Position numbers and translations under genes: made by a program. From Trichosphaerium sp. ATCC 40318 (taxonomy: Eukaryota; Protista; Tubulinea): a DNA stretch of 64,000 nt. The stretch spans positions 62,001-126,000 of the forward strand of contig JALMLS010000552.1 of NCBI GenBank assembly GCA_038496445.1, given 5' to 3'. Each line of letters opens with the position of its first letter. Within the stretch, counting starts at the first letter, position 1. The notes beneath the pieces were generated by a model. The model was not told the DNA's origin, did no database searches, and worked only from the letters and a program-made list of their open reading frames with translations. Shown here piece after piece: positions 16,713 through 45,963 of the stretch.

Positions 16713-18823
16713 ATGGAGAGGAAACAAGTATTCAATGCCTACTAACGCTGGGTAGTCTAAATCATCAGAAAACAAACCACATGAAGTGAAAGTGGTATTT
16801 GTTGGTTCGCTCTTATTTATTATTACTTAAATTGTTGTTTCATTGTATAGAAATTCGACAAGATAAACAGTGAAATACCTAATGCAAATGTAGGGGCTAC
16901 AGGTGCGGGTAAATCTTCAATAGTAAATCGCTTCACACGTGACCATTTTGACGACAAGATTCATTTCACTGTGCGTATCATTCATATTTTCCACTTTGAT
17001 TTTAACGGCAATGTAATGAGAACCAGTTCCTTGGCTAGTTCCTTACTTGACATTAAATGTTACTTTCCTTTGTCTTAGTTCTGTGTAGTATAATAAAGAG
17101 GTGGCTTCAACAGAGGTAAAAATTGATGCCGCCACCGTGAGGCTCAAAATATGGGTAAAGATCTAATACTACAAGCCTTTTTTAACTTTCATTTGTAGGA
17201 TATTGCAGGTATGTCTTTGAAACAGTTAAGTAGTTATTGTATGTAGGTTATAAGGGAGAATTACATGATGTACATTTTACTCACGTTTTCTGTAGTACAG
17301 TTGTTGCTCTACTGTTTTATCTCATTAAGATGTCAACTAATGCTAAATAGTGGTCATACTTTAGGAATGCTTCGGGTGTCATGGTTGTATGTGATATTAC
17401 AAACGACTCAACTTTAAAAGCATGCCTACAATGGCATCAATATTTAAAAGATATTCATGTCACTTTCTTACAACACACTAAAGATCCTGGTCCTACTATA
17501 CTTCTACTAAACAAAGTATGTTAATTATTTTAAGGAGATCGTATAAAATTCTAGAAATGGAGCTGGCTGACAAGCTTAGATTGACAAGAGAGCGTCAAGC
17601 GATTTTACCAAAAGTGATGATGAGATGAAACAGTTCTGCGAAAAACATGGATTCCTAACGTGGTTTGAAGTGTCAGCAAAAGAAAATATCAATATCAATG
17701 AATCTGTCTTGTATTTGGTTGAAGAAATAGTCAAAAAAAGAGAAAAAGATGAATTAGTAGAAAACAAAGTTCTGAAACCGCCAGAAGTTCTAGCAAAAAA
17801 CATAGGTGACAAATCAGTTCCATATGTGAAAGACACTTCTAAGGTTGATCAAACTCATCCTTGTGGTATTCTTGAACAGTCAATTCTAATGAAACAAAAT
17901 ACCAGCAGGGTACCAGTAATCAATACAGAGAATGACGAAAAGAACAACAACTTGAAACCATTTAAAGAGATTTGTGAAAATTTGAAAACAGAACACAAGC
18001 GTCTGTCAAAGGCTTTGATTGACCCCAATCACAAGTACACCAAGATTGGAGACTCACCAGACCATATGTACATGATCAAAGATGCATTGAAATCCTCCGA
18101 TATACAAAAAAACAAAGAGGAATATGTTGATGAGGTAGAGTACTTTTAAACAACATGTTGGTTCAACGTCAAGCTGACTTACTGTGTCACTAATTTTTTT
18201 TAATTTGCATAGTTTGATCCAAATAATGGTAATTACCTTCCTAATAATACACAAAACTTATCAAGTGATATGCCACTACAAGATCAACAATATTTGGACA
18301 AGGTACATCTTTACTCAAATGATTTGACTTGTGCAAGTAAAGAACAGTATTTCACAAAGGATTAATTAATTTCTAACACGACACCCCATAGTTTGACAAT
18401 CCTAGCAAGCAATGTACTCCTGTCATGTTTGAAGAATACAAAGATGTTGCTTCTTTGTCTTCCATGATGGGCGTTGTAGTATCCAATGTTGTAGGGTCTG
18501 CAGATTCATGGATGGAAAAGGATAGTTTCATTGGCGATCCTGAGGTGTAGCTACACCACCTCATTATCAATAAAGTTAACTTCTGTTAGCCAATATTCAC
18601 TTCTTCAATGAATTCACACCAACAGCCCAACAAAGAACTTGATTGGAAAGAAAGACTTGTCAAGGTAGGCATTGAAAATAGAAGAGCGCAAGAACTTGGA
18701 TCATTGATGAACGATGTGGTAGTTAGAGTGACTGATGTTACTGGACATACTTTATTAGAACTTGGATTCACTACCAGTGAGCGTATCAAAGTCATCAAAG
18801 CAAAGAGGAACAACATGCTTTGA
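16713..18823 (+). CDS. Rab32/38-like GTPase fused to a C-terminal KFG/SWxDK/SAM-like cassette, copy 1 (apparently intact)
   Basis: Spliced motifs VKVVFVGATGAGKS, W|DIA|G, NK|ID and FCEKHGFLTWFEVSAKENINI (Rab32/38 signature). Last exon WKERLVKVGI..ELGFTTSERIKVIKAK. Confidence 0.8.
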
Positions 18824-19054
18824 CAAAGGGGCCTAATATCACAAACGCTGTAGTATGAACTACCAATATTAAACGGAAATATGATGTTGTTCATTAATTA
18901 AGATACACTAACTCAGACACGCCCTTTATTTTGAAGTTGAGGTGCTTTTCGCACACTCAAGCCTTTACATAAAGTACAGCTACAATGTGCACGAACTATG
19001 TAGCACATGCCTAGCGAATGCATAATTAGTTCATTTTTTGTTTTGTAAAGTGCT

Positions 19055-19585
19055 CATATTGTCTGTGTTGTCAAGTTTTACTAATATTTTCTGAGTTTCT
19101 AGCACTTTAGCAGATCTAGCAAGAATTGACACTTGTGTCAAATGGTGTAGATCTATCACAATGTGAACTATTGGCGTGCCATTAATCACAATGCTGTCTA
19201 TCATAATACGACTTACGTCCCTTAAGTGTAAACACATTTTTAATGTCTGTTTCAAAGACATTGGCAAGACGATTGCAGTATTTTACGTAGACACTGCACA
19301 TGCAGGTTAAGACCACATCAGTCTTTATTGCGATAAAAGCGAAATAAAAGGTTATAGGACTGTATCTTTCCCAGCTCTTACATAAGAGACAGTTTTATTG
19401 GAACTAGAGATACGGTTGGATTCGCAATAAAATTTCCGCTTGACTATGTAAGCGCATTACATTTTAAAAAAGTGAGATTTGCAAGTTCTGTCAGAAGCCA
19501 AATCCGTCAGATCTGACAGATAAGGCAGAAACTGGTTTTGTATGCTAAAAGTCAGTCTGGCTGAAAACTTGAACGAAACGTATTG
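19055..19585. mobile_element. MITE-like dispersed repeat, copy A (family shared with 49422-50195 and 39020-39190)
   Basis: Both ends align with 49440-49730 and 50070-50190. Degenerate terminal inverted repeat catattgtctg...caagtttt / aaaacttgaacgaaac. Confidence 0.6.
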
Positions 19586-19672: not shown

Positions 19673-22659
19673 ATGGCTGAGCCGCAATCAAACGAGGTTA
19701 ATTTACAATATGTTAACCGGTTGGCCACTGGTTGGAATTATTCAATGGCAATCGCAGACGATGGCTTTGTTTACACGTGGGGACTAAACAATGACCGCCA
19801 ATTGGGTAATACAGCCGACAAAAAGAGTTCTATCGCAAGACCAATACAGTCACTCATAAATATTGTCTGTATTGCTGCTGGATCCTACCATAGCCTTGCA
19901 GCTGATTCAAGCGGTATTGTGTATGCATGGGGCTGTAATTCAGATGGTCAAGCGGGTTTGGGTCACTTTGAGTCACCTGTTTCGTCACCAACACGTGTTC
20001 CAAATCTCACAAATATCACTCATGTCGCTGCCTTTAATGCAAGTATGGCGTTATCACAATCAGGTAATGTCTACTCTTGGGGAAGCAACTACCACGGTGA
20101 ATTGGGTCATTCGTTTCGTGAAGTAGTTTCATTTCCAATAGTAATTCCTCATCTTGAAAAAGTCACAAAAATTGAAACTAGTGAGTGTGTAAGTGGAGCA
20201 ATTACATCAAAAGGTAATGTATTTCTTTGGGGAACAAACTCTATCGGGGACATAGACAAATCATTATTCTTGAAACGAAATAGAATTTCATGTGTTCCAA
20301 TTATTGAAAATGCCACTGATATTGCCATTGGTCGTTATCACGTGCTTGTTCTCCTCAAGTCAGGACAAGTATTTTCTTTTGGATGTAACAAAGATGGGTG
20401 TCTTGGGTTAGGGCGGCTTGGAATCTTGGTAAAAAAAGAGTATGCTCGAGGTATAATTAAAGGATTCAACAATATCAAATCTATCCATGCTGGTCACAAT
20501 TCATCATTTGCAATTGATGATGAAGGTTGTTTGTTTGCTTGGGGTAAAGGGAAATGGATGGATCGGTTCAAATCAAAGACACCATTAAAATTACCTGGAA
20601 AATATCGTGAGTTTGCCCACAAACGAGCCCATTCGTTGGCAATATCTCAAGATTTTAGACTAGTCACAGGTACGGGCAGTCTCAACAGTGATGGCGAATC
20701 AGAACCACAGAACTTGATGTTCAATCACAACAAAGTAATGTCACGTTTTTCAGTATGTTACACTCAATGATATTTAGATACATCGTCAAGAATTGGATAA
20801 ACAACCCATCAACAAATCATCAATCAAAGTACATCTATCTGATGATGAGATGTTCATGTCAAAAAAAGTCATTCGAGATGTACCTCAGAAATTTGGAGAA
20901 TCAAAACAAGATCTTGACATTCTTGAAAATGCACGTCATCTCATTCAGTTCAAACAAAGACAAGACCTCAAACAAATCATTGACAACAATGTAAGTCTTC
21001 ACTATGTAACTTCCATTGATCAGTAACTCTTTTGACTTTTTAGGACGGCTCAGTTGATTCAATCAAGCATGAATCAAATCAACAACCACCTTTAATCAAT
21101 GTAAGTCTTCTTTATGTAACTTCCATTGATCATTAACTCTTCTATCTTTTAAGGATGATTCAGTTAAGCTCATTAGGACTAGTAACTGAAAAAATTAGGA
21201 CTAGTACAATTTTCGTTCACACCGCGTGAAGTTGCGTTAATTTCAATAGAGCCCTTATTGTCAGGTTACAATCTAGTGCGTTTATAATATGCTATATATA
21301 GTGCAGGCGACCAACACATCATTCTCACGGATGCAATCACAAATTGTAAGTGTACTGGTCAAACTCAAGTTTAGTAAATGCAACATAGCAGGGTGCTCGT
21401 CAGTTTGAATCCCATAGAAGGAGTTGGTTCGCCAACAAAATCAAGTAACATTGTTAAGAGACATAACCTTATCATGGTAAAGTCTGTGGAGAATAGGTTT
21501 GTCACTCATTGGAGTGCCAAAAAAAATACTAGGTTGAGACACATATTAACTGAATTGAAACACGTTCATACATCTGTAAGTCTCTGGGCGAGTACATTTA
21601 ATTTAATATTGCTTTTTAGAAGTATGCTAATACAATGACTTGCATCAAAGGGTTTTCAGTGCTTTTCGATTTTCTTGGGCCAGGTGAGTGGCCTTTCACA
21701 ACTTTTTGGATGGCTCAAATTGCACAGCCGCTACTTACCTTCAGAATTGTTCTCTTCGGTTTTATTATGTCAATTGAGGTGTTCAGTAAGGACTAATGGA
21801 TAACAGTAATTGCTGTTAATTATTGATTTGCCAATACTTTTTTTTTACTGTAGACTATCTTCGATGCAATGAAATTCTGTGATTTATTGAACCAATTATT
21901 TTTGATTTTGAACTACACATGTATGCTTCCTGTGCTTCAATGATGAAGCCAATACATGCGCTGGTACAAAATCACCTAGGCTCCAGGGTATATGTTACAT
22001 TGTTACCAACGCCTTTACTACGACAGTTCAGCTTGACAAATGATGTAAAAGTTTTCACGTGACAAACTTCTTTAAAGAAGGTGAATTTGAAAAATCTTAC
22101 TGATAGTTCTGGATTGGCACGGTTACAGCCATATCTAAGAACCCCCACCCAATAACTCTGTACTTGAGTACTTTTTGCCTTGCAAGATACCACCACACCT
22201 TTAGTTTGTGTTGAATGTTATGTACATCGCTTATTTTTTGTGTGTTAATCGATGCACGTGTTGAACTGGCGTTTTTCGTCTTTTGTGGGCTTTTTCTTAT
22301 GGTTTGTCAAACGAGCCTCTTAGCATGTCTATCATATGTGCGAGATGCGTTTCCGAGTATTTTTGAGCTGTTTTGACCAAGTTTTACAAGGGTTACTAGT
22401 CCTAATTTTTTTTTTTACTAGCCCGAACGAATTAACATCAACGAATCAAATCAACAACCACCTTTAATCAATGCTGATGAGCTTGTATCAACACAATCAT
22501 GGATGGATAAGTTTGAAACGATCAACCTTGACAATGTAACAACTACAACTAGATCGTATGTGTGCTGACTTGAAAGATATCACAGGTGAGATTATGAAAG
22601 AGCTTGGATTCACACTACTTGAACGTCTCCAGTTTATTAGATACCAAGACAACCACTAA
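19673..22659 (+). pseudogene. RCC1 beta-propeller + KFG/SWxDK/SAM cassette, copy A; propeller ORF intact, cassette broken by a TE and a deletion
   Basis: RCC1 blades to 20752; a 25-nt intron at 20753-20777 leads into the cassette; TE at 21168-22432; a ~140-bp deletion at ~22550 relative to copy B removes a splice acceptor and half of the SAM-like domain. Confidence 0.8.
21168..22432. mobile_element. Non-autonomous TIR DNA transposon (PIF/Harbinger-like TAA TSD; can also be read as TTAA)
   Basis: The empty site is visible in paralogue B (gattcagTTAAcatc). Here TTAA occurs at both 21164-21167 and 22432-22435. Imperfect ~37-bp TIRs with repeated ttaggactagta; no transposase ORF. Confidence 0.85.
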
Positions 22660-23737: not shown

Positions 23738-25834
23738 ATGGTACGTAGATATCACGTGTCATTTGTTAAATTACTAGCTAACGCTAATAATTACGTTACT
23801 AATTACTCAGGGCACTTTAGCGTTCACGTTCGAAATCACGTGACTAAAATTTATTGCTTTTTCGAATTTCGTTGTACGCTCACTAACATTGATGTTGTAG
23901 TCAGAATCAATAGAATGCAACAGATATTTTAAGGTGGTAATTGTTGGTTCGAGACCCTTTTTTAAATACTTAAAGGTGTTAATAATGGTGTTTCAAAACA
24001 CAGGACATCCAGGTTCAGGAAAAACGTCAATTGTGAAGCGCTTTACAGATAACACTTTCTCGTCTCCTAACGCAACTGTACGTATAATGCTTGTCTCTTT
24101 TCTTGTATTGAAACGTGTACAGAAAACTCAATTTTTTGAAAAAGGCAGAACTGTTTGCTCATTTTCACAAATGATTATTCCTTTTGTATCTCAAAAAGTT
24201 TGTTGTGTTGCTTATCTTAATAGTATGGAGTTGATTTTTCTAGCAAATTCATTAATGTTGATAACACTAAAGTGAAGCTACAATTATGGGTAATTGAACA
24301 TAAAAATCACATGTTTGTTTTTGACTTGAATTTGTAGGAACTTGCAGGTTTGTATTGAAACAAAAGTATGCTGTTTAAACTGTGTTTGTAGGACAAGAGC
24401 GATTTGAAGCAATTGGCAGAGTACAACTTTACTTTAAGTATGCAATTATTGATATATTTTACTAGAAAAATTGCAAGAAAGGATTAGGAGCCATGGTTGT
24501 GGTAGACATTAAAACCCATGCTCTTGAAGTTGCTTTACGATGGCAGAATTTTTTTAAACACAAAATTTTCTTTCCTGGCACTAAGGATCCTATTCCTACC
24601 ATTATACTCCTAACCCACGTACAACAAAAACTCGATATTTATCAATCACATCCTTGTTTTGCACTGACATTAATGATACATTTAGAGTGACACGAAACGC
24701 TACCAGGATTTCAAAAAGAGTGATGTTGAAATGGATAACTTTTGTGAAGAACATGGATTCCTCACATGGTTTGAAACATCAGCAAAGGACAACATTAATA
24801 TTAAAGAGTCGTTTTTGTACATTGCTAAAGAAATACTCAAAAAATCAAAACAAGTTGAACTGAAGAGACAAGAAAGCAATACCGAAGGCAGCAAGAAGAA
24901 AAAGATAGAACCTGCAGAGTTGAAAGGAGATCCAAAAGACAAGTACTTATCAAAAGCGCGTGTTGATCCCAATCGTGTATACACCAAGTTTGGAGATGAT
25001 CTTGAGCATATTGATATCATTCAAGAAGCTTTTGAAGCCTTTAAAGTACAGCCAAACCAACAAGAAAATGAGGTATGTTACAAGAAAAAATATACACTAC
25101 AGCTGCATCCTGACTGGCTGATCTAGTCTGATGCTGCATACAACAATGCTTACACCAATATTGATTCTTTATCTCCATCTATTATCAATGCTGCAAATTC
25201 ATGGATAGACAAAGATACTTATGAGAGTGAAACCATGAATGTACCCAAGGTACACCTATCAAATAACTGCTAATGTTACTTAGCTACTCACATTAATTGC
25301 CAATTAAATATTAAAATTACTTTAGCCGACATTCAGTTCTCCTTCAGCGACTTCAACGCACCAACAGCCGCAAAAGCATCAAGACAACAAGGTATATGTT
25401 AGTAAAAAATCTACAACAATCTGAGACCATCTAGTCTGATGCGCCATACAGCAATGATTGTAAGAATATTGATTCTTTCTCATCTGTGATTGGTGTTGCA
25501 GTATCTACAAATTCATGGATAGACAAAGACAGTTACATCAAAGAAACTAAGGTAGCTGTACCATATAAATTATCAATTAACTATTACTATCTAGATGACA
25601 TTCAGTCCTCCTTCGCCACCTTCAACGTACCAACAGCCCAACAAAGAACTTGATTGGAAAGAAAGACTTGTCAAGGCAGGCATCGAACATAGAAGAGCAC
25701 AGGAACTTGGATCATTGATGAACGATGTGGTAGTTAGAGTGACTGATGTTACTGGACATACTTTAGAAGAACTTGGATTCACTATCAGTGAACGTATCAA
25801 AGTCATCAAAGCAAAGAGGAACAACATTCTTTAA
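23738..25834 (+). CDS. Rab32/38-like GTPase-SAM cassette fusion, copy 2 (apparently intact)
   Basis: ATG-only first exon; FKVVIVGHPGSGKT; W|ELA|GQERF; TH|SD; FCEEHGFLTWFETSAKDNINI; duplicated SWIDKD exon; SAM-like last exon. Confidence 0.8.
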
Positions 25835-26345: not shown

Positions 26346-28100
26346 TTAGTGGTTGTCTTGGTATCTAATAAACTGGAGACGTTCAAGTAGTGTGAATCCA
26401 AGCTCTTTCATAATCTCACCTGTGATATCTTTCAAGTCAGCACACATACGATCTAACAATAATCCAAACTTCTGTGATCTCGATTCAGTAAACCCAGCTG
26501 ACATTAATACTGTGATCCAAGATGATGGTTTGTTTGTCACAGATTCTGATGAAAGTGCAATCGAAGGCTACAACAAGTTAGTGAATAATAGGATTCCAAA
26601 AAGTTGTAGTTGTTACATTGTCAAGGTTGATCGTTTCAAACTTATCCATCCATGATTGCGTTGATACAAGCTCATTAGCATTGATTAAAGGTGGTTGTTG
26701 ATTTGATTCATTGATGTTAACTGAATCATCCTTAAAAGATAAAAGAGTTAATGATCAATGGAAGTTACATAAAGAAAACTTACATTGTTGTCAATGATTT
26801 GTTTGAGGTCTTGTCTTTGTTTGAACTGAATGAGATGACATGCATTTTCAAGAATGTCAAGATCTTGTTTTGATTCTCCAAATTTCTGGGGTACATCTTG
26901 AATGACTTTTTTTGACATGAACATCTCATCATCAGATAGATGTACTTTGATTGATGATTTGTTGATGGGTTGTTTATCCAATTCTTGATGATGTATCTAA
27001 ATATCATTGAGTGTAACATACTGAAAAACGTGACATTACCTTTTTGTGATTGAACATCAAGTTCTGTGGTTCTGATTCGCCGTTATAATTAATGCCACCT
27101 GTAACCAAACCAAAACCTTGAGATATTGCCAACGAATGAAATGATTTGTGGGCAAACTCACGATATTTTCCAGGTAATTTTAATGGTGTCTTTGATTTGA
27201 ACCGATCCATCCATTTCCCTCTACCCCAAGCAAACAAACAACCTTCATCATCAATTGCAAATGATGAATTGTAACCAGCATGGATAGATTTGATATTGTT
27301 GAGTCCTTTAATTATACCTTGAGCATACTCTTTTCCAAAAAGCCCAAGCCACCTAACCCAAGGCACCCATCTTTGTTACATCCAAAAGAAAATACTTGTC
27401 CTGACTTGAGGAGAACAAGCATGTGATAACGACCAATGGCAATATCAGTGGCATTTTCAATACTTGGAACACGTGAAATTCTATTTGGTTTCAAGAATAA
27501 TGATTTGTCTATGTCTTTGATATTTGTTGTTCCCCAAAGAAATACATGACTTGTCAATGTAATTGCTCCACTTACACGCTCATTAGTTTCAATTTTTGTG
27601 ACTTCTTCAAGATGAGGAATTACTATTGGGAGTGAAACTACATCCTTGTGAAATGAATGACCCAATTCATTGTGTGTGTTGTGTCCCCAAGAGTAGACAT
27701 TACCCGATTGTGATAACGCCATACTCACATGAGAGGCAGTGACTTGAGTGATTTTGTTGAGATTTGGAACACGTGTTGGTGACGAAACAGGTGACTCAAA
27801 GTGACCCAGACCTAAACCCACTTGACCATGTTTGTTATAGCCCCATGCATACACAATACCGCTAGAATCAACTGCAAGGCTATGATAGAACCCAGCAGCA
27901 ACACAGATGATATTTATAAGTGACTTTATTGGCCTTGCGATAGAACTCTTCTCTTCACCTTTATTACCCAATTGGTGGTATTCGTTCGACCCCCACGTGT
28001 AAACAAAGCCATCGTCTGCGATTGTCATCGAATGTGCTAAACCAGTGGCCAACCGGTTAACATATTGTAAATTAACCTCGTTTGATTGCGGCTCAGCCAT
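26346..28100 (-). CDS. RCC1 beta-propeller + KFG/SWxDK/SAM cassette, copy B (1-nt frameshift at ~27352, possibly an assembly error)
   Basis: Near-identical paralogue of 19673 (MAEPQSNEVNLQYVNRLATG); same 25-nt intron at 26997-27021; ends SWITVLMSAGF..DITGEIMKELGFTLLERLQFIRYQDNH. Confidence 0.8.
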
Positions 28101-28771
28101 AAACGTGCTTTGTGAAAATGTATGTTGTAAGTGTTTACTTATTTTGACAAGCGGCAATTTTTCTCCAATCAACCATTTTGAACGCTGAAAAATCGTTTGG
28201 AGTGCGCACAACAAGTAAATCACCTTTGTCTACCCGTACCGTTAACCAAGTTGCTCTACTTTCGCGAAAGGGAAATGTCAACTGTGGCATTTTTTCTAAC
28301 TGCCAAAACACTCTCACCATACTTTCTCACATGTAGAGATACGGTTTGTTCCATTTTTAGTTCTGAAATATGCGACATTGGAATTGTAAATCTCAAGTGA
28401 GCAGTTAACGCTTGTTGCGTTATTTTTACGCGTGGAAAGCACATTCAGGTACTTTTGGTATGTCTAAAATCCAAAATATGCTAAAACCAAGCAGCCAAAA
28501 AAAGTTACAAACGGATTGCTTGTGCACTTACAAGCATAGTACAGATATGAATTTACACTCAAGATACTGTTAGCACCCATTTTAATGGTGTGTGTTGAGT
28601 TAGGCGTTTAGGCGTCAGGTTAAGTCAATCCTGGTTCAAGATACTTTGAGCCCTCCTTACTTTTTGTTTACGAAATTTGGCTTTCTCATAAATGGTACAT
28701 AGTGTATCACGTGCCTCTGTTAAATTACTAAATACATTCAAATATTTCGGTCTATAGGTACTTTGGAATCA

Positions 28772-28902
28772 GGGGCCATAGTTTTTTCCGAATTTTCCGA
28801 AATCAAAAATTCAGAAAGTAGAAAGTGTAGAAAGATGCATAGCTAGGGCAGTCCACTAAACTAGAAAGCGCCTGGTTCTCTTACGGTCGGGTCCTCTCTG
28901 TG
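28772..28902. mobile_element. Left half of the Mutator-type MITE
   Basis: ~130 bp nearly identical to 3211-3342. Confidence 0.8.
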
Positions 28903-29973
28903 GCTTATCTTATTAGATTGGTGCTGACTTTCCTGCAAATTTGTACATGTTGATAACAAGACTACAGTTAAGCTACAATTATGGGTAATTAAAAAGCAAA
29001 TCACGTGTTGGGTTTTGACTTGAATTTGTAGGAACTTGCAGGTTTGTATTGAAACAAAAGTATGCTGTTTAAACTGTGTTTGTAGGACAAGAGCGGTTTG
29101 TGGCTAACAGCAAAGTACGACATTACTCCAAATATGTCATTAGTAGTAAAGTTTTTGTGTTGAAGCTGGGTTACAATGGCTAAAATTTCTTAAACACAAC
29201 ATTTTCTTTCCTGGCACTAAGGGTCCTATTCCTACCCTTATACTCCTAAACACAGTACAATAAACTATACTTCAGACAGTCACTGACAAGGTTAGCTAGA
29301 CAAGATAGATGATTTTCAGCACTTTAGGGCAGAACATGGAATGAAGCACTTTTGTGAAGAACATGGATTCCTCACGTGGTTTGAAACATCAGCAAAGGAA
29401 ATAATAGATATTGAAAAATCGTTTTTGTACATTGCTAAAGAAATACTCAACAAATTTGAACAAGTTGAACTGAAAAGAACTGAAGAAGGGCAGATACGCA
29501 AACAAAATACCAAAAACTCAAGTATTATGTTGTCTTTTTTTTAAAGGCTTTTTTCATACAGACGAAAAAAACTCCAAAGAAGTATGTCACTCTTTTCATT
29601 GCTTTACAATACCATTAACTTGTATATTTGAGAATGAACATGACGATATTGACAGTACATCATCAACAGAAGCCGAAGGTGATCCTAACAATACATCTGT
29701 GGTAACAGTAAACAGTGACAAACCATTAATTGGCGATACAAATACCAAGGAGAGTGTCGAGTTGGATCAAACTCAACAACATGCTCACATTAATTCCAAC
29801 AAGGAAATCAAACCACATACAACCAATGCACCTGTACTCAACAAAGGTACGGTAGGTAAGAACGACTGTGATTACATGAAAAAGATAGAGCGTGCAGAGG
29901 TGAAAGAAGATCCAAAAGAGAAGTACTTGTCAAAAGCGCTTGTTGATCCCAATCGTGAATACACCAAGTTTGG

Positions 29974-30127
29974 TGTAAGAGGGTAAGGTAGTCAAGAGTA
30001 GTGGTTGAGCTGTTGTATACTATTTATTATGGTCTTAAGGACCGTGTACATTAAGTGTGTGTTCTGTGAAGATTGGTTGAACATCAGTATGATTCTTGTT
30101 GACTAATTGATTGATTTCCACCTTACA
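29974..30127 (-). repeat. 3' LTR
   Basis: Identical to 36414-36567. Confidence 0.97.
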
Positions 30128-30252
30128 AGAACTCCCTTATCCTTTAGTATGACGCCCTCGTCATTGTCCTGGTATATATCGACCGACTTGCTATATGGAA
30201 ACCTTAGTAACCAAATTAACCAGAATTTAACTGGAGGCAAATTCTATAACAA

Positions 30253-33200
30253 TCAGTGATCTCCACTCAGAGACAACGCAATATCTAGCGCAAATATATC
30301 TTCAAAGTTCTCTATAATCTTGTCCATCCAATCTCTGATATCTCCTTTCGAGTTACATCTCTTCAATTCTCCTATGAGTTTCTTCTGTGTTGTTCCATCT
30401 CGTACGTATGGTGATCCCATTCCCATAACGTCTTTTATACTCTGCTTTAGCTTATCTTTCGATAACGTCGGTGCTGTTGCCGCTATATCTTTCAATATAC
30501 TTTTGAGTAATTCTGTTCTATGTGCTTTTGTAGATCTTGTTATTCTTTTGTTAGTCGATGTTACTCCCCCTTTTTCTAACTTTTCTGCTATTTCTTTTAC
30601 CTTTCCAATATCCTTCTCAGGTAATTCATCTTTCTTCTTTTCTTCCTCTTTGTTATAATCTGGTACGTAATCATCATCGCCGACCATTCTTACTTCACCA
30701 TTTTCATCCTCAAATTTCGTATAATCTTCTTCAATATCGTCTTCTGGTCGTAAGAATGAGTCAATGAATGGCTTGATTCTCTCTACGTTCATGACTCTGC
30801 TCATCTGACTATCTTCTGGCAATTGTAGTAGTACCGTGTTTTGTCCTACTAACTTTAATATTTTATATGGGCCTCTCCATTTGCATGTGAATTTTCCATG
30901 TTTTTCCTTCTTATATGGTACTCGTAACCATATCAATTGATCTTCTACAAACTTAACCCATCTACGTCTCTTGTTATAATATCTGGCCTGATCCTTCTTT
31001 GCTCTTAATATTGCCTTCTTCGTTGTTTGATATGCGTGTTTGTAATCGATGAGCCAATATTTCTGCCCAGTGTGACATGTTATATTTATCAGGTATTTCT
31101 ACTTTATCTTCTGATAACATATCTACTGGTAATCGTGGTTCTCTTCCATACATCAAAGCGAATGGTGAGTACTTTGTTGAATGGTGTACCGCTGTTCTGT
31201 ACGCGTATAATGCGTAAGGTATCCAATAATCCCAGTCATTCTGATTCTCATTTACGAAAGATTTGAGAATCTCTACTATTGTATGATTAAACCTCTCTGT
31301 CTGTCCGTCTGTTTGTGGATGAAATGCCGTCGTCTTCAATGGTGATATATATAGAGTTTGATATACTCTATTCATAAATTTCCCTGTAAAGTCTCTTCCT
31401 TGATCTGTTAAGACTTGTTTCGGCATTCCATATCTGAAACAAAATTCTTTAATAAAAACTATTGCTACGTCGGTTGCATGATGACTCGTTAGTGGATACG
31501 CATCTGTCCATTTTGTGAAGTGATCTGTGATCACTAACATATATTTATATCCTCTAGCTGTCATTGGTAGAGGACCCACTATGTCCATGGCTACCAGTTC
31601 CATCGGTTGTAGTATCGGGAACGATACTGTGAAACCTCCTTTGGGTTGTCGTGGTGTCTTCGCTCTTTGACATTTCTTGCACGAGTCACACCATTCCTTG
31701 ATATCTGAGTACATCTGAGGCCAATAAAATCTTCTTGTAGCTCTATCGTATGTTTTAATAAAGCCAAAGTGTCCTGCGAATGGCATGTCGTGACACGTTC
31801 TCATCACGAAGTTCTGTAGTACTTCGGGTACATATATTTGTACGTGTTGTTGCTTCATGTCAATTCGTGATCCTCCTGTACCCACGTGATATAATATGTG
31901 CGTGTTTTCGTCATATCGCAACATTTTTGCTTTTGTTATGAATATGGATTTCTTAAATCCGTATTGTTTTTGTACCCAACTTGGTATTCTTCCTTTCGTC
32001 AAAAACTCTATGTAAGCTGACGCTTCTCCATCTTCTCTCTGTGCCGCACTCCAATTTATAGGTGCTAATTTATCTATAACATTTACTATGTGTGGATACC
32101 AAGGCGTAAATTCATCTCTTTTAGATACTGCCTGTTCTTCGTCAATGGTTCCATCATATGTACCCTCGGTAAGTAATAATAGTTGATTTCTTCTATGATC
32201 AACTGCACTGGTTGTATGTATAAAATTTACTCTGGCCAGAGGTGGACGTGTGAGTGCATCCGCGTCCAAGTGCTTCTTACCGGGTTTGTATACGAGTTTA
32301 AAATCGTAATTTTGCAACTCAAGCAGCCAATATGCAACTAACGCTCTAGGATTTGATAGGTTCTGAATATATTCAAGTGGTTTATGATCAGTGTATACGA
32401 TCAACTTGAATTGGGAGAAGGATATATATCCTGCGAACTCTTTTATCGCCAATATGATACCTAGGGTTTCTCTCTCTATAGTAGAGTAATTTTGTTGCGC
32501 TGCGTTAAAGGTCTTACTGTAGTATGCCACTACATGCTCTTTTCCACCCACCTTCTGTACCAATGTAGCTCCCGCTGCAACTTTGGATGCATCTACATGT
32601 ATTTCGAAGGGTAATGTAAAATCTGGGTGCCTTAGTATTGGCGGAGATATCAATAAATTCTTCAGTTTCTCATACGCCTTTTGTTGTACTGGTGTCCAAT
32701 CCCATTCCTTATCTTTGTGTTTGAGTAGATTTAGTGGATGTGCCCACTTCGCGTAATCGGGTACGAATCTTCTGTAGTAGCCAGTGATACCCAGGAAACG
32801 TTCCAGCTCGGTGACATTAGTTGGAGGCAAAGCCTCATCAATGGACTTGATAATTCTAGGATTTGTCGCTATCCCTTCTGCAGATACAACATGTCCTAAG
32901 AATTCAACTTCGTCTTTAAAAAGCACAGTCTTCGAGGCTTTAAGCATAACATTATGCTCTTCCAGGCGGTCAAACATGAGCTTAAGATGTACGAGATGCT
33001 CTTCAAAGCTCTGACTGAATACTATGATATCATCTACGTAGCAGAGGAGTGTAAATTGAAAAATAGCAAAAAATCGGTAATCGATACAGAACCTCCAAGT
33101 TCCATCCTTTTTCTTTACCAGTACCACAGGAGCCGACCATTGCGACTTAGAGGGTTGTATCACCCCTTGATCCAACATCTTCTCTAATTCTTCTTTCACA

Positions 33201-36200
33201 ATTGCTCTCTTGTGTGGATTTAGCGGTCTGTATGGTATATGTACCGGCTTTGCTCCTTCTTTTGTATCTATAAAGTGCTTTGTTCCTTTGGCATTTGCAG
33301 GTTTCTTCAGTTTAGTGGTGAATCTATCCACGTAACCTGCCATGAATTTGTATGCTCTTTCTTTTTGTTCTTTTGTTAATTTCGATCCTTCCATTTTGAA
33401 CATTTCTTTGGCTTTCTTGATCTCTTCCTCCGTGATATCTTTTTCTTCTTCTTTCATCTTTCTAATCTCCTTAGTGTAATCAATATCCAACGATGTAACT
33501 TCATCATGCTCCGTTAAAGGCGTGAACCGAGCAATGTTGCATTTTGCTGGTATAAATTTTCCTTTGTTAGACATATTCATCACTTGCACCGGTACTGCCT
33601 TCGTCTTAACCACTCTACCGCATGTTCTCGCCATCTGTATACCGAATCTATTCAATAAATAATTGTTTCCGTCAAATTCTTCTCCCTTATGTGCCTCTAC
33701 TACCCCTTCTTTAAAAGTAACAGGTGCAGATAGGTTCGCCCAAAACGTCACTTGCGAATATTTTGGAATCTTGATCCTGTTTCCAGTTATAACATTTGCG
33801 GCGTCTGCTCTAGTGGATTTTTGACGTTGACAAGTCATTCGAATGTTCTCTCCGAGTCGATTCCGTACGACATTTTGATCAAATAACATGGACACTCCAA
33901 ATTTTGACATCATATTTGTACCGACCAAGAGAGGGTATCGAAAATTCTTCACTACGAAGCACATCACATTCTTCTTGTATGTTCCCAGCTTGATTGGTAC
34001 TACTGTAGTTCCTATTACGTTGATAGGAGAATTATTAGCCGCGTAGACCGGTTTGTTGTGATCCTTGAATATCCTCTGTTTCTTTCCCAATTTCTTAACC
34101 AAACTGTAGTCAATTATACTACACGATGCGCCTGAGTCTAGCACCGTCTCTATCATCTTTACTTTACCCACTGCAGTAGTTGTAGTTGCAACATTGAAAT
34201 TATATTTCGCTGTGTTGATGCCCCTCATCTCGTCTTCTTCTATATTGTTGATCACTTGTGTGTACTCAACATCTCTTCCTGGTTTCTTGATATTGTCCCG
34301 TACTTCGTAGTCTCTGTCGCACTTTACTGTAGGTATCTTCTCATTAACTAAGCAATTTATACTCTCACGTTGTAATCTTGTGAGTTTTGCTTCGTCTCTT
34401 ATTTCAAATCTGTTTGTAATATTTGAAGGACCGGTGAATAAACTTGCAACGTTATACTGAGAACCGCTCCAGATACCTTTATTTGGATATTTTTGTTCAT
34501 CCACAGTGTACACATCTCTACGTGGTACAGGACACTCTTCTTCCGTGTGGTAGTATCCCTTACACCTGTTGCAAACTACTTCTCTACTGCGTGGTCTTCC
34601 CTCGTTTCTTCTTCTGTCATTCCTCTGGTATCCTCTATCTTGATCACTCCTCGATCCATTTTTCCAATTGCCACGGTTGCGATCGTAGTTAGGCTGATAA
34701 TTCCTTCCTTTGTAGCGCCTCTGTGGGTTATAGTTGTTGCGCCCACGACCCTTTCCGTATCTGCGTCCTTGATTGCCATTATCGCGTCTGTTGTTCCTGC
34801 GATCATAAGACAATCTCTTTCCTCCATTTTGACGCTTCGCATTGTAACCATCTCGTCTGCGATCTCCATCCTCATCATATCTTTTCCTTTTCCTCTCTGA
34901 TCCCTTGTCGTAGATCACATTGACCTCCTCTGTTCCTTGGTTTGATCTCTGGGCGTCCCTGGTCTTTGCAAAGTCTTTTACTTTGCGATTTTCTTCTATT
35001 TCAGTGACGTACTTAAGTACTTTTTGAAAATCGTACTTTTCGTAACTGTCACCGAACTTAGACTCCACCTTGAGCTTGAGAGTGTACAGCAATCCTCTGT
35101 AGAACTCTTCTTCCATCCTTTTTCGTGATAATTGCGCAAGGGTAGCGTATTTTTGTACCAAGGCTCTATACTCCTCAATACTTTGTGAACTCTTCTGTTT
35201 GAGCTCCTCAAGCTTCATCCGCGCTTGTTTCCGTTGTAATTCAGGACTGTAAGCACGAATCAGAGCCAATACCGCCGCCACCGGGTCAAATGTGTACTCC
35301 TCCTTGCTCAACATCTCATTCACCTTTCCTTTTGCCAAAATACGCAATGCAAAGATATATTCTCTCTTCCCCAAGTTGAAGCCGTTAGCCATCTGTTGCA
35401 CGCCTTTGAGATAGTTGTTGAGTGCAATAGACGTCATCTCGCCATCACCAAACGTCGGAAATGAATTGGTAATGCCACCAATCCTCGATAAACTTCCGTG
35501 GCAGTTATACCAATCATTTCCAATGCACTTTCCATCAGATCCTTTCACTCCATGCGGTAAGAAATCATAAATCGCTTGTCGTTCCTTCTTTGTGCAATAA
35601 CCATCCTTAATAGTGGTCATATGGCGTCGTTGAGGCAGTTGCTTATCTTCATACTCCAATCCTTCGCCCTCAGAGTCAGATTCCGCTGGTTGTTGTTTAG
35701 AATCATTTGATTGATTCTTCTTCGGAATTTGGGAACCGTTCTCATCGCCTCTATCACCGTCAGAGTCATCATCTGAGTCGCCATCGTCTGAAGGGGGTCC
35801 ACCAGCTGCTATGTTGGGGATTGGTATTGATGGAGTTTTCGATTTGTTGATCGAAACTCTTCTTTTCTTCGCTGGTGTTGAAGTTGCTATCGGTGCTTTC
35901 CTCTTCTTCTTTTCCGCCGCTAATCTTCTGCTGATGCGTTTCATCTTCTTTTCCACCACCTTGCATTGAATTTCCAAACGCAAAATCAATCTCTCCGTTT
36001 CTTCAGCGTTTTCAATTTCTGCAGAGGTGAGGCCCCTGTATTCGTCTCGTTCCTTCGGTTCTTTCGGTTCAGACGTATCTCCATGGTGTGAGCGCTCTTC
36101 CTCCTCATATCCATCTTGCAAAGAGCCATCGTCGCTGTCTTCCTCGCTCTCATCCATGTTGCCAGGTGTTTGGGTAAGTTTAACGCTGTCACTACCAGAT

Positions 36201-36325
36201 TTAATTAGTTGCTCAAGACTTCTATCAAGATGTGGAGGTAATCTGGCGTTATCTAAACCGTGTGCCGTGTAATCCTCGCTGTTATCTCGTAAAGTCTTCT
36301 CCCCGTCGTCGTTGTTTGTTGTCAT
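30253..36325 (-). CDS. Gypsy Gag-Pol polyprotein in a single frame; RT internally deleted; integrase tail frameshifted at ~31040
   Basis: Zn knuckle CNRCKGYYHTEEEC; protease LDSGA; RT WRFCIDYR..YVDD; RNase H VDAS..YTDH; integrase HDMPFAGH..CKKC, MDIVGP, TDQG, TERFN; GPY motif in ORF 30253..30936. Confidence 0.95.
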
Positions 36326-36413
36326 CGTTGATTGATATAGAATTCCTGTTTATTGTACTTGAAAGATTTTCTTCGTGTGTTTCAAAATTCAAAGACTGCT
36401 GCGTGTCGCCAAA

Positions 36414-36567
36414 TGTAAGAGGGTAAGGTAGTCAAGAGTAGTGGTTGAGCTGTTGTATACTATTTATTATGGTCTTAAGGACCGTGTACATTAAGTGTGT
36501 GTTCTGTGAAGATTGGTTGAACATCAGTATGATTCTTGTTGACTAATTGATTGATTTCCACCTTACA
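36414..36567 (-). repeat. 5' LTR
   Basis: Identical to 29974-30127 and followed on the minus strand by the PBS. Confidence 0.97.
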
Positions 36568-37463
36568 TTGGAGATGATCTTGAGCATATTGACATCATTC
36601 AAAATGCTCTCGATTTACTGCAAAATCATCAAGAAAACAAGGTATTGTTAGTGAGAATCTACAGCAATTTGACTTGGCCATTTAGTCTGATCCGCCATAC
36701 AACAATGATTACCAAAATATTGATTCTTTCTCACCTGTGATTGATGCTGCAGCATCTACAAATTCATGGATAGACAAAAATAGTTACATCAAAGAAACTA
36801 AGGTATACACCACATCAATTATCAATTAACTATTACTACCTAGATAACGTTCAGTCCTCCTTCAACGAGATCAACATACCAACAACCCAACAAAGACCTT
36901 GATTGGAAAGAAAGACTTGTCAAGGTGGGAATTGCATATGAAAGAGCACAGGAACTTGGATCATTGATGAATGACGCAACTGTAAAAGTAAGTGATATTG
37001 TTGGGCACGTTTTAGAAGAGCTTGGATTTAATGTGGTTGAACGTATTAAAGTCATGAAAGCAAAGAAAATCAACATCCTTTGATAATCCAAACACTAAAA
37101 GATTGGAGTAGAGAACATGGATCACTAGGATGAGGCTCAACTATCCTGAGACCACAAACTGATACATTAAAGCTTCTGTCAAATAAAGTCACTGTTTTTT
37201 TATTTAACATCTTAGCATTCACTGCTTATTCTGCACAAACAAGATACTTTAGGGCTCGAAATTCGTTGCAAACAGTAATCTCCTGGGAGTAGAGGCGGTT
37301 GTGGTTTTGTCCCAGCTTACCAGCCTACAATAAATTGTAACTGGCTAAACATTGGTCACGGCAATTCAAGAAAGAAAATTACCTGGAAACTACAAATTAA
37401 CCCCCACAGTTATATTCAAAAAGCAAAAAAGCAACGCATAGCGAACTCTGTAACAAAACTAAA

Positions 37464-40561: not shown

Positions 40562-42150
40562 ATGCTGTTTGGAGAAAAGAAAGCTATCAAAAGTAGAGTG
40601 GCGCTCATTGGTTCGCTTTTTACCCTTTTTCTTACTTACTTACAGTGTTTAGGGAGCGCTAACGCTGGTAAAACTAAAGTTTTTAGACGATTTTCTCAAA
40701 AAACGTACTCAGGTGACCCAGAAGTACTATGACCCGTTTAACTTTTTTCTGTCGCTCATTAATATTAGCGAGGCATTCACTTTGTTTCACGACGAGTTGA
40801 ATTGTATGAAGCTAGTGTTACACTACAAATATGGGCAAGTTTGTATCATTCATGTCAAAATATTGCGCAGGTTTTTGTTTCTGGATCAAAAGTCAACGCT
40901 ATGATTAACTTGATTGATAAGTGCATATAAAAATATGCTAACGTATTATAGGATATTCCGCAGAAATCATATAACCAGCCCTATTCTCGAAGAGCTTCAG
41001 GGATCATGATTTTTGTTGATATCTGCGCTGATCCAACTTTTACACATGTGTTACAATTCTGTGAAGAAATCAAAAACTGTCACTTCCCAGGGACTCAAGA
41101 CCCTGTCCTTACTATTCTCATCCTAACAAAGGTACCAGTTAATTTTGGTTAACTCTTAGAAATTGACAAGTGTAGATGGACAAAGAAGATTACACTCGTT
41201 GCAGGAAAAGTAATGATGAACTAGATAGCTTTTGTGAAGAACATGGATTCCTCACATGGTTTGACACATCAGCAAAGGACAATATTAACATTGAAGAACC
41301 GTTTTTGTTTATGGCCAAAGAAATAGCCAGAAAAGAAAAGGATATTGAAGAAAAAAGAAAATTGGAGCATGTTGAAAAACCACGTAGATCATTTTTTAGT
41401 CGTATTTTTCGAAAGAAAATAACTAAGAAAGCACCCAACCAAACACCAGCAATCAATACAGATGACGTAAATAAGAAAGAAAATACTGCAATGACACCAG
41501 CAAGCATTAAATACGATGAAAATAAGATTGACAATGCGAAAAAGATAGATGCAGAGTTGAAAGAAGATCCAGAAGAGAAGTACTTATCAAAATTTGTTGA
41601 TCCCAATTGTGAATACACCAAGTTTGGAGATGATCCTGAGCATATTGATATCATTCAAGACGCTCTTGAAGCCCTTGAAATACAGAAACATCGAACAGGC
41701 CACATTAACAAGGTAACATTTTTAAAAGAATTATGTCTTATGTAATTGATGATCATTTAGTCTGAACCAAATAATATTGAATTGTTTATTGAACATCTAC
41801 GTTTGAATGAGGTACATTTTATTTAAACTAATTGTGTTAAGAATAATTCTAACAACAGAACAACTCTTTTAATATTGGCACTCTATCTATGGTGGATAAT
41901 GCCGTTTCTACAAATTCATGGATAGACAAAGACAGTTCCATGAATGAAACAAAGGTAGCTACTCCACAGTAGTTGCCAACTAAATATTAATATTACTTTA
42001 GCCGACATTCAGTTCTCCTTCAACGGCTTCAACATACCAACAGCCCAACAATGCACTTAATTGGAAAGAAAGACTGGCCAGTTGGGTATTGAATGTGAAG
42101 GAGCACAGGAACTTGGATCATTGAACGATGCTGTTATTAAAGTGACTAGT
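40562..42150 (+). pseudogene. Rab32/38-like GTPase-cassette fusion, copy 4; SAM exon frameshifted and truncated
   Basis: VALIGSANAGKT; W|DIPQ; TK|MD; FCEEHGFLTWFDTSAKDNINI; KFGDD; SWIDKD. The SAM exon has an indel at ~42080 and homology ends after VIKVT. Confidence 0.7.
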
Positions 42151-42737: not shown

Positions 42738-43577
42738 TTACTTAGTCACCAAAGGCAAGTTATAGTATTGGTCTTGGATGCAATGTATCCCAAGTGCTTC
42801 AACAGCCTTTGCCGTAATTGAAGTCTTATAATGAAGTTCAATGCACTTTAGAGACTTTAAGTGCTTCAAGCAAGAGTTTGTGATGCTGGTGCAATTCCAT
42901 AAATTGAGTTGTTCAAGATTAACCAAATGCTTTATACCTTCGTCTGTTATCTCATAACAAAAGCTCATATCTAAGTGCTTGGCATTTATTAAAGATTTGA
43001 TCCCAACGTCTGTTATTCTCCCTCCAGCTGATATGTGTACACTATGAACATTGCCAAGATGTTTGAGCCATGAATCTTCCGGATCTCGTATTGTAATGCT
43101 GTGAACATCTTTAAGTGCCTCTATTCCTTCCGCAGTAATATCAATACAACCATATAGGGAAATTGTATGTACACCTTTCAGTGCTTTTAACGAAACATCC
43201 GTCACTGATGTGTTGTCCAAGTTAATTTCACGAATATACTGACTTCCTTGTACTAGTGCAAGGATACCTTCATCAGTTATTTTTGATTCACGTAGATTTA
43301 TAGCTTGAACTCCAGAAAGACAAGCCATGTCATCCTTTGATAGTTGCGAGAATTTACAATTAATTTTAGTATTTTTAAGAAGAGGACTGCCCTTGAGAAC
43401 AAGGCAATCCGCTGACGATCTCACACGGATAACAATAAAGCCGATATTTTGTCTAACAATGTCGTTAAACACGTGCGATACAGCAGATGCTGTAATACGC
43501 TGTTTTTTGTTTAAATAGGTTAGAATATGCGTTAATGTCTCAGCTGGTAGCTTTTGTAGTGATAACACTTGATTCAT
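42738..43577 (-). CDS. Intronless F-box + LRR protein
   Basis: LQKLPAETLTHILTYL..ASAVSHVF (F-box) followed by ITDEGI/VHTISL repeats. Paralogous to 1911-3148. Confidence 0.88.
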   Translation of the reverse strand: MNQVLSLQKLPAETLTHILTYLNKKQRITASAVSHVFNDIVRQNIGFIVIRVRSSADCLVLKGSPLLKNTKINCKFSQLSKDDMACLSGVQAINLRESKITDEGILALVQGSQYIREINLDNTSVTDVSLKALKGVHTISLYGCIDITAEGIEALKDVHSITIRDPEDSWLKHLGNVHSVHISAGGRITDVGIKSLINAKHLDMSFCYEITDEGIKHLVNLEQLNLWNCTSITNSCLKHLKSLKCIELHYKTSITAKAVEALGIHCIQDQYYNLPLVTK

Positions 43578-44011
43578 CGTAGAGGTTTAGACAATAAAAA
43601 AATACCATGCGACTTAGCGCCATTAAGTCATTGTAAAGCTGCTATGATTATCGCCTGGTGCAATATAATGTTTTCAAGGTTTTATGACACATGTCTTACA
43701 CATGATTGTTGACTACTTTTAATTAAATTTGCCAACGTATTCACTTGTTTTAAAGTGTTTGTTTTGCTACATAGTATTTTACAAAAACAGGCAACCTAAA
43801 TCGAAATAACTCTATTCTAACAACACTATTAGTGCTGGATGCTTTTTGAAGATTTGCATCCCTACCCCTTTGGTTCTTTTTCTTGTGCGCTTTTTGTTGG
43901 ATCAATCCATGCGCTAAGACGACTAATCCAAAAGTTAAAACAATTCAAGAAAAAGAAAAAGTAACAGCTATAACAATTTTTCTTTTATTTGTACGCTAAA
44001 CAACAGTTGCA

Positions 44012-45963
44012 TTAAAGTAGCATATTTTTCTTGGCTTTGATGATTGTGATACGTTCCATTGCATTGAATCCCAACGCTTCTAAAATACTACCAGTAATAT
44101 CAGTCAGCTTGATGACAGCTTCATTCATCAATGATCCAAGTTCCTGTGCTCTTTCATATGCAACGCCTACCTTGACAAGTCTTTCTTTCCAATCAAGTTC
44201 TTTGTTAGGCTGTTGGTACGTTGAAGTTGTTGAAGGAGGACTGAATGTTGCCTAAATAAATGACATTGATACGTAATAAGTAATTGAAGTTGGGCTACCT
44301 TTGTTTCATTCACGGAACTATCTTTGTCTATCCATGAATTTGTAGATACTGCATCTATGATGGACGAATAACTTTTATCTTTTATCAAATTTTGATGATT
44401 TTCTTGCACTAGAAAGTCATTGGTATTTGGTTCAGTTGACTAAACAGGACATAAGATACATACATCTTTCTAACACATACCTCATTGCTTTGGTCTTTTT
44501 GGTGTTGCTGTATTTCAAACGCTTCAAGAGCGTCTTGAATAATATCAAGATGGTCAGGATCATCTCCAAACTTGGTGTAATCGCGATTGGGATCTTCAAG
44601 CGCTTTTGACAAGTACTTCTCTTTTGGATCTTCTTTCAACTCTGCACGCTCTATCTTTTTTGCGTTGTCTTTCTTATCTCTGTTGTAGTCTGTACTGATT
44701 GCTGGCGTCACTGAGTAATTGTGCTTCACTGATCTTCGACTTTTAACAGCGGCAAGAGGTTGGCTTTGATACGACCCCTTTGTAGGTTTGATGCGCCTTG
44801 GTGGTATTTTGTATGATTGAGGGCTTTTTGGGAAGAGCATGTGGCCTATATTTATCCAAACTGAGTGTTTGTTTTGTAGTATCATCATATACAAGCCTTT
44901 TTGTCTGATTTCCTTCTTTCTTTCGAAAAATACGGCTCCAAAATGGTACCTGTGTTGGTCTTTCAGCAATTGTTATCGGAAGCTTCATGGCAGGTGTATG
45001 TGAACTCATGACATTCTCTTCTCTTTCTAGTATTTCTTTGGCCATATATGTGAAGGGTTCTAAAACATTATAATCGTCCTTTGCTGATGTTTCAAACCAC
45101 GTGAGGAATCCATGTTCTTCACAAAAGTTATCCATTTCAACATCACTCCTTTTGAAATCCTGGAAGGGTTTCAAGTCACGCTATTCTGCTTGTCAGCATT
45201 CTGTTGAAAGAGTATTGATTGAAGTGCCTTGGTTAAAATAAGAAGAGTAGGAACAGGATCTTGAGTGTCAGGGAATAGAACATTGCTTATTTCTTTGCGC
45301 CACAGGATTGGGTCTATAAGACTTGGATCAGAAATAATGTCAACAAAAATCATGATCCCCAAGGCTCCTCTGGCATACATCTAATTTGAACGTGTTTAAC
45401 AAGATGTCAAATAGTAAACAGTTCAGCTCAATTTCATACTTGGACTAGTTCTCTAAATCGCTCTTGACCTACAATTATAATGAGCAAAATTCCGCTTGAA
45501 ACAACAGACCTGCAGTATCCTACAAATACAAGTTAAAAAAAATGCTGATGATATTTTGTTTGATTCTATTCTAAATTACTTGCATATATCGCAAGAGTCA
45601 CAGTAGTGTTATCAAAATGTATTTTTTTGACGGCCGCTAAGTAGGAGCCTATCTAATGTTGAAATAAGCCAAAGGAGTGATGTTAGAACGATTGCTTTAA
45701 TAGACGCTGAAAAGGACACGTTTATATGTACAGTGGGGTAACAAGACGAGAATACGTGTTGTGTTAAGCGTTGTAAAAGTACAGTTTTACCCGCATTACA
45801 ACTTCCTAAATTACTGTTAGTATTACAAAGAGTAGAAAGGCTAACCAATGAGGACCACTTTCTTTTGTTCAGGTATTTTATTTTCTACTGTTTTGTACTA
45901 CATTACACTGATGAGCACGCGTTTTAAAACAATTTATGTAAGCCACGTGCTGGGACGTACCAT
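44012..45963 (-). CDS. Rab32/38-like GTPase-SAM fusion, copy 5 (unresolved frame change in the linker at ~44750-44950)
   Basis: M|YKTVE..VVLIG|SCNAGKT; Y|DTA|GQERF; TK|RD; FCEEHGFLTWFETSAKDD; KFGDD; SWIDKD; SAM-like end ..LGFNAMERITIIKAKKNMLL. Confidence 0.75.

Follow-up and report, generated by a model that had tools for sequence, protein, structure and literature searches.

The stretch of DNA analysed here comprises 64,000 nucleotides of contig JALMLS010000552.1 (positions 62,001 to 126,000; hereafter the window). Between 16.7 and 46 kb, it harbors five Rab32-like genes (Rab1 to Rab5) and two RCC1-propeller genes (RCC1-A and RCC1-B), all of which carry homologous C-terminal cassettes. With moderate confidence, this locus can be regarded as a tandem array that evolves by gene birth and death, and whose modular, SAM-tailed scaffold proteins form a lineage-specific family built by exon shuffling. 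The members of such a family would consist of a globular head (here a GTPase derived from Rab32 or an RCC1 propeller, and elsewhere one or more further partners), followed by a long linker predicted to be disordered and a tail with a SAM fold, and the cassette would have spread via exon shuffling and local duplication. The presence of five Rab32/38-like and two RCC1 genes with homologous tails had been put forward in a sequence-only reading of this DNA, and all the peptides quoted there were found in the cluster. A tblastn search over the whole window showed that copies of the tail are confined to the cluster. The genes and their tails are arranged as follows:

16713..18823 (+), Rab1: Rab32-like GTPase, linker and KFG/SWMEK/SAM tail; 11 exons, 483 aa, open reading frame (ORF) intact; KFG segment ~17967-18134, SW exon 18392-18544, SAM exon 18590-18823
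19673..22659 (+), RCC1-A: propeller exon 19673-20734, KFG exon 20778-20990, SWMDK exon ~22434-22535, truncated SAM remnant 22543-22659
23738..25834 (+), Rab2: Rab32-like gene with tail; 12 exons, 437 aa, intact; KFG segment 24905-25072, SAM exon 25595-25834
26346..28100 (-), RCC1-B: propeller exon 28100-27040, KFG exon 26996-26784, SWMDK exon 26730-26617, SAM exon 26567-26346
28692..37083 (+), Rab3: pseudogene; tail exons still open, SW 36686-36802 and SAM 36844-37083
40562..42124 (+), Rab4: Rab32-like, degenerate switch II, no SAM domain; KFG 41524-41712, SW exon 41859-41954
44012..45963 (-), Rab5: Rab32-like gene with tail; GTPase exons and tail exons intact; KFG 44666-44481, SW exon 44439-44299, SAM exon 44251-44012
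18590-18823, 25595-25834, 36844-37083 and 44012-44251(-): Rab tails detected by tblastn, with a frameshifted remnant at 42002-42124
26346-26567(-): RCC1 tail detected by tblastn, with a half-deleted remnant at 22543-22659

RCC1-B (ATG at 28100, minus strand) and Rab3 (ATG at 28692) are placed head-to-head with 592 bp between them, and RCC1-B and Rab2 are tail-to-tail, with stops at 26346 and 25834. This is in agreement with the orientations and spacing described in the sequence-only reading.

The shared cassette and its predicted fold

Comparison of the last exons of Rab1 and RCC1-B showed 34% identity over 62 residues in a gap-free alignment (BLASTP E=5e-14). The KFG segments of the Rab and RCC1 genes matched each other directly only at E=0.04. 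However, those of both gene types matched the KFG region of the Trichosphaerium transcript P0100 (E=2e-7 and 5e-6), and the earlier proposal that they are similar is therefore borne out as homology by transitivity. The motif SW[IM]DK was found seven times, always in the expected exon, and this segment occupies an exon of its own in every copy. The linker contains two short conserved motifs, namely, a helix of the pattern KFG-x(3-6)-D-h-D-x-h-[QE]-[DN]-A, and S-W-x-[DEN]-K. The KFG segment of every Rab copy shares its exon and ORF with β6–α5, and hence the junction between Rab and cassette is independent of splicing. In the RCC1 genes, the propeller is encoded by one exon and the KFG, SW and SAM segments by three further phase-0 exons, which in RCC1-B join to give an open frame. 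All the exon boundaries of the cassette are in phase 0, which is the arrangement expected under exon shuffling.

The tail fold was predicted from a seven-sequence alignment; an alignment that set exon fragments against P0100 (20 rows) was excluded from folding, as MAFFT had misplaced the KFG exons. AlphaFold2 modeled the tail as a helical bundle of four helices and a short 3-10-like turn, with a predicted local distance difference test (pLDDT) score of 82.7, and of >90 in a second model built for the P0100 cassette. The top Foldseek match was 3IDW, the SHD2 domain of Sla1 (TM 0.75/0.79, root-mean-square deviation 1.3 Å over 61 columns, prob 1.00), followed by the SAM domains of tankyrase, BICC1, ANKS3/6, SARM1 and EphB2 (TM 0.54-0.66). 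At the sequence level, Pfam SAM_4 matched weakly in two of the seven tails (best E=0.004). Pfam scans of single tail exons retrieved no SAM family at E<=1, and their FeoA and GerD matches were rejected as spurious. A search of the tail profile against PDB sequences likewise gave no SAM domain and nothing meaningful. The suggestion that the tail is SAM-like was thus upheld by the predicted fold, with SAM_4 as its weak counterpart in sequence. The models support a SAM fold for the tail, closest to that of Sla1 SHD2.

The region upstream of the SAM domain was predicted to be disordered except for a short, low-confidence helix at the D-x-D-x-I-x-D-A motif, and KFG and SWxDK are hence most readily taken to be short linear motifs. 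The likeness to Sla1 extends beyond the predicted fold, as the SAM domain is preceded in both chains by a short conserved acidic-hydrophobic motif. However, the sequence identity to SHD2 is 18%, the cluster proteins lack SH3 and SHD1 domains, and their upstream motif (e.g., H-I-D-I-I-Q-D-A) is not a clathrin box. The SAM domain of Sla1 binds an LLDLQ motif intramolecularly and forms head-to-tail polymers (PMC9499636). Sla1 may hence serve, by analogy only, as the nearest mechanistic counterpart of the cassette.

The spliced model of Rab1 is free of stops and all its introns are GT..TAG; its start codon is uncertain because the first intron has only 28 nt. Rab2 also has zero stops and canonical introns, and its SWIDK exon and the 5' part of its last exon are duplicated internally (25127-25249, 25326-25391, 25435-25551). 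In Rab5, the linker shifts frame somewhere within 44893-44712, which reflects either an unseen intron or a frameshift. Single introns mending this frame have many formal solutions, and none of them was convincing. The introns of the cluster are short (28-160 nt, GT..TAG). In the models of Rab1, Rab2 and Rab5 (16728-18589, 23741-25594, 44252-45960), the acceptor is TAG in 27 of 28 introns and CAG in one, and GC donors (GCAAGT, GCACTT) occur in two Rab5 introns and one Rab4 intron. The coding part of the first exon consists of the start codon alone in Rab2, Rab3 and Rab5, directly followed by GTAC[GA]T. The D-x-A-G of switch II is encoded by a conserved 10-nt micro-exon (GAxAxTGCAG), which in four Rab copies is flanked by canonical splice sites; Rab4 has this micro-exon and the next two exons merged into a single exon (40952-41131). 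The micro-exons are located as follows:

17199-17208, switch II micro-exon
24338-24347, switch II micro-exon
29033-29042 (approx.), switch II micro-exon
45510-45519(-), switch II micro-exon

GTPase heads, propellers and damaged copies

The Rab-like heads have the fold of small GTPases, and their closest relatives are Rab32/38. A search of the β6–α5 exon against PDB retrieved Rab32 (6e-12) and Rab38 (7e-11), with Rab10 as the next best match (1e-5). The spliced GTPase domains align with Rab32 from end to end at 34-45% identity, including the Rab32-type loop before β5, and the WFETSAK motif at G5 is also shared. The homologue search with a Rab4 exon matched only two Rab32 proteins. The β4–α3 exon of the cluster has diverged further, and that of Rab5 gave no Rab match in PDB. 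Among themselves, the GTPase domains are 38-47% identical, as against 64-91% for the SAM exon of the Rab copies.

Analysis of the nucleotide-binding motifs revealed that G1 and G5 are kept in the Rab-like copies and that G3 or G4 is altered in every copy, so that none has an intact G1–G5 set. Rab1 contains GATGAGKS at G1, DIAGY at G3 (the catalytic Q replaced by Y) and NKID at G4; Rab2 contains WELAGQ at G3 (D to E) and THSD at G4; Rab4 contains DIPQ and TKMD; and Rab5 keeps DTAGQERF at G3 with TKRD at G4. The cluster copies thus differ from Rab32 and Rab38 in the Q-to-Y and D-to-E changes, in the loss of the DxxG glycine, and in the replacement of NK by TH, TK or NT. No C-terminal prenylation cysteine (CC, CXC or CCXX) was found in any copy, and the open tails end in K-A-K-[RK]-x-x-x-L. 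In place of the prenylation cysteine of Rab32 and Rab38, the proteins carry an extension of 250-300 residues that ends in the predicted SAM fold. RhoBTB proteins similarly combine a divergent GTPase, changed at catalytic residues and devoid of a motif for lipid anchoring, with a C-terminal domain for protein interaction or oligomerisation; however, they belong to the Rho and not the Rab32 lineage, carry a BTB rather than a SAM domain, and are non-homologous beyond the G domain.

The propellers matched the Pfam RCC1-like domain PF25390 at E=4e-74 (RCC1-A) and 3e-51 (RCC1-B), along with four to five RCC1 repeats. Their nearest relatives in PDB were HERC2, UVR8 and RCC1 (1e-29 to 1e-41), and the homologue search with the RCC1-A ORF retrieved generic RCC1 proteins only, at <=34% identity. 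The RCC1-like proteins Claret and GLO-4 are putative Rab32-family exchange factors only; the exchange factor established biochemically for Rab32/38 is BLOC-3, and in worms activation of the family has been demonstrated for CCZ-1/GLO-3 (PMC6268011). Similar to these proteins, the RCC1 genes of the cluster encode an RCC1-like domain and adjoin Rab32-family-like genes. A third RCC1-repeat gene is present at 2-960 (+), truncated by the start of the window, and no KFG/SW/SAM cassette was detected 3' of this gene.

Only Rab1 and Rab2 are clearly intact. Lesions were found in Rab3, Rab4, RCC1-A and RCC1-B (four of the seven genes), and Rab5 is doubtful. These lesions, the missing C-terminal Cys and the degenerate nucleotide-binding motifs had all been overlooked in the sequence-only reading. 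Rab3 is without P-loop exons and shows a 1-bp deletion in the GVDF exon (~28925), a partly deleted β4 exon and a TAA in the linker (~29540). In addition, its KFG exon is interrupted at 29973/36572 by a retrotransposon:

29974..36567 (-), Ty3/gypsy long terminal repeat (LTR) retrotransposon inside the Rab3 KFG exon

The two LTRs of this element, 154 nt each, are 100% identical, with TG..CA ends and a TTGG target-site duplication, and the insertion into Rab3 is recent. An uninterrupted gag-pol ORF of 1783 aa contains protease, RNase H and integrase domains. The reverse transcriptase (RT) match is limited to the C-terminal third of the RT profile, and this domain seems to be internally deleted. 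A separate 227-aa ORF (30253-30936) contains a Tf2-1-like SH3 domain. The string EKYLSKALVDPNREYTKFG/DDLEHIDIIQ, quoted in the sequence-only reading, is indeed present, but Rab3 had there been read across the 6.6-kb element.

In the last exon of Rab4, a 1-bp deletion leads to a stop at ~42122, followed by more deletions downstream, and the SAM domain is lost. In RCC1-A, a deletion joins the intron start straight to the middle of the last exon, with loss of SAM helices 1-2; the junction at ~22535-22552 leaves a 17-nt "intron," and read-through meets a stop. The intron of this gene is rearranged and contains a partial copy of an exon along with ~1.35 kb of additional DNA. The propeller of RCC1-B contains a frameshift near 27366, where it is 4 nt shorter than RCC1-A beside an A-run, resulting in a premature stop. 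Some of the lesions, e.g., this 4-nt difference, could be assembly errors.

Relatives of the tail, selection and genomic setting

The search of 1.84 billion representative proteins with the tail profile gave four matches. Two of these, P0100 and P0101, are true relatives and both are protist mRNAs; P0099 and P0102 were rejected as false tail matches, being low-complexity repeat proteins. P0100, a transcript of Trichosphaerium sp. ATCC 40318, contains the full contiguous KFG-SW-SAM cassette in one mRNA. P0101 (L001/P0101) is a polyadenylated protist transcript with contiguous RCC1 propeller, linker and SAM tail, and its propeller is 37% identical to that of RCC1-A (E=5e-60). The N-terminal 60 residues of P0100 and the linker of P0101 showed no Pfam family even at E<=10. 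Scans of JGI contigs with the tail and KFG patterns found no relatives. Scans of IMG/VR and of a viral structure library found no close relatives of the tail, and a giant-virus origin is therefore unsupported. The literature searches found no description of a Rab32-SAM or RCC1-SAM fusion. The claim that the architecture is undescribed is supported by these results.

In the tail tree, RCC1-B clusters with P0100 (99/96) and P0101 clusters with the Rab tails. The two tail subtypes thus cut across the N-terminal domain, and each is found on a further N-terminal partner as well. A tree with the RCC1-linked tails constrained to a single clade was marginally rejected (p-AU 0.042, approximately unbiased test). 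Since the tails do not group by N-terminal domain, a shuffled module fits better than a co-evolving pair. The ratio of nonsynonymous to synonymous substitution rates (dN/dS) of the tail exon was 0.25-0.46 among the Rab copies (dS 0.14-0.67) and 0.06-0.47 between RCC1-A and RCC1-B, for which the propeller gave 0.38-0.66 at dS ~0.2. The tail is the constrained part and is under purifying selection.

The window is eukaryotic DNA; it has a GC content of 36-37% and contains, besides the LTR retrotransposon, intron-poor F-box/LRR and MORN_2 genes. The published genome of Trichosphaerium sp. has a GC content of 37.7%, a mean intron length of 75 bp and enriched F-box and MORN families (PMC10521059). 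The GC content, the short introns and the F-box/MORN genes of the window agree with that genome, and the host of the cluster is hence probably an amoebozoan resembling Trichosphaerium. The F-box/LRR and MORN_2-repeat genes are located among the cluster genes at 1911-3172 (-), 42738-43577 (-), 22872-23498 (-) and 60121-60750 (-), and the Trichosphaerium genome paper ascribes these families to gene transfer from giant viruses (PMC10521059). An intronless, Cys/His-rich protein of ~311 aa is encoded by three paralogues at 37464-38369 (+), 48018-48953 (+) and 54479-55429 (-), the first of which is broken into two ORFs; this family matched no Pfam domain, and a search of 5.8 billion proteins gave no homologue. 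Two further small-GTPase gene fragments, Rho/Rac-like and Arf/Arl-like, lie at ~52146-52577 (-) and ~58461-58794 (-), with weak tblastn matches only.

Alternative explanations and significance

Rab-family GTPases are defined by lipid-anchored membrane cycling. As the Rab-like proteins of the cluster are without prenylation cysteines, the SAM tail may replace the lipid anchor as a targeting or assembly device. By analogy with other SAM domains, it would act by head-to-tail self- or hetero-association, and the upstream helix motif might gate the SAM domain by binding back to it, as in Sla1. The divergence of the catalytic and guanine-specificity positions makes it unlikely that the GTPases are switches cycled by a guanine nucleotide exchange factor (GEF); constitutive or nucleotide-insensitive binding modules would be the more likely role. 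Several observations weigh against a scaffold family of this kind. The SAM assignment is a predicted structure from seven sequences, the Foldseek E-values are weak (best 0.11) because the domain is short, and the sequence-profile searches of the tail stay short of the Pfam thresholds. Both oligomerisation and autoinhibition rest on analogy. The test on the tail tree was set up post hoc, with the identities already known, and long branches are involved. No transcript or protein of the window copies was found in the searched protein and contig collections. With four of the seven copies damaged and a fifth doubtful, the local array may be largely non-functional.

The last point leads to the possibility that the cluster consists largely of dead DNA, a residue of exon shuffling and duplication at this site, with the functional members, if any, elsewhere in the genome. 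The lesions in Rab3, Rab4, RCC1-A and RCC1-B, the ambiguous frame change in Rab5 and the missing transcripts all fit such a decaying remnant, and the relatives known to be expressed, P0100 and P0101, clearly represent other genes. On the other hand, Rab1 and Rab2 are fully open models of 11 and 12 exons with canonical splice sites, the dN/dS of the tail exon is 0.06-0.46, and assembly errors could account for some of the lesions. The decaying-remnant explanation is considered to have a minor, though real, chance of being correct.

The first of two alternatives offered in the sequence-only reading is a cognate pair, in which the RCC1-SAM protein is the exchange factor of the Rab32-like-SAM protein and hetero-association of their SAM domains joins enzyme and substrate. 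Such a pairing is speculative and appears unlikely. Genes of the two families are intermixed within 30 kb, their common tail has a fold of the oligomerisation type, DTAGQERF is retained in Rab5 and NKID in Rab1, and Claret and GLO-4 have been proposed as exchange factors of the Rab32 family (references in PMC6268011). However, both RCC1 copies of the cluster are broken, RCC1-B by the propeller frameshift and RCC1-A by the half-deleted SAM exon, and two of the Rab copies are pseudogenes. Classical GEF-driven cycling is also doubtful, as every Rab-like copy deviates in G3 or G4. The established Rab32-family activator is BLOC-3 (CCZ-1/GLO-3 in worms), the RCC1 proteins being putative. Moreover, the Rab and RCC1 tails of the window belong to different subtypes, each of which is also found on another N-terminal partner.

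A more far-reaching proposal, which is held to be distinctly unlikely, is that the cassette is a portable polymerisation and targeting module, which would co-assemble non-prenylated Rab32 pseudo-switches, RCC1 propellers and other heads into a signalling or anti-pathogen platform in amoebae, with the upstream helix gating SAM polymerisation. The least probable explanation, again a speculative one and the second alternative of the sequence-only reading, is an immune-type array in which fast-evolving Rab32-like and RCC1 domains serve as baits or decoys for effectors from intracellular bacteria or from giant viruses, and the conserved SAM tail as a polymerising signalling output. Amoebae host Rab-targeting bacteria, SAM polymers drive signalling in SARM1-type proteins, the cassette is carried on interchangeable N-terminal domains that diverge far faster than the tail, and the array is tandem, with birth-and-death dynamics and a recent transposon insertion; however, an executioner or enzymatic output domain is found neither on these proteins nor next to them, pairwise dN/dS is below 1, and relaxed constraint with pseudogenisation accounts for the divergence equally well. 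Pfam scans of the exons and neighbouring genes detected only Ras, RCC1, MORN_2, F-box/LRR and retrotransposon domains, with no decoy receptor of the NB-ARC/LRR or TIR type.

The significance of the SAM-tailed scaffold family is moderate, as most local copies are damaged and the link between the Rab and RCC1 families is putative. The architecture is a new combination of domains, the kinds of which are known, i.e., the atypical multidomain small GTPase and the SAM scaffold. If correct, a Rab32 derivative with a SAM-fold tail in place of the prenyl anchor, and with that tail common to RCC1 propellers, would represent a new way in which a small GTPase is built and placed. The locus also shows, in a clean natural case, how a cassette of phase-0 exons is passed between heads that are unrelated. 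The tail family, nearly missing from public protein space, represents an innovation specific to its lineage, in an amoebozoan group that has been little studied.

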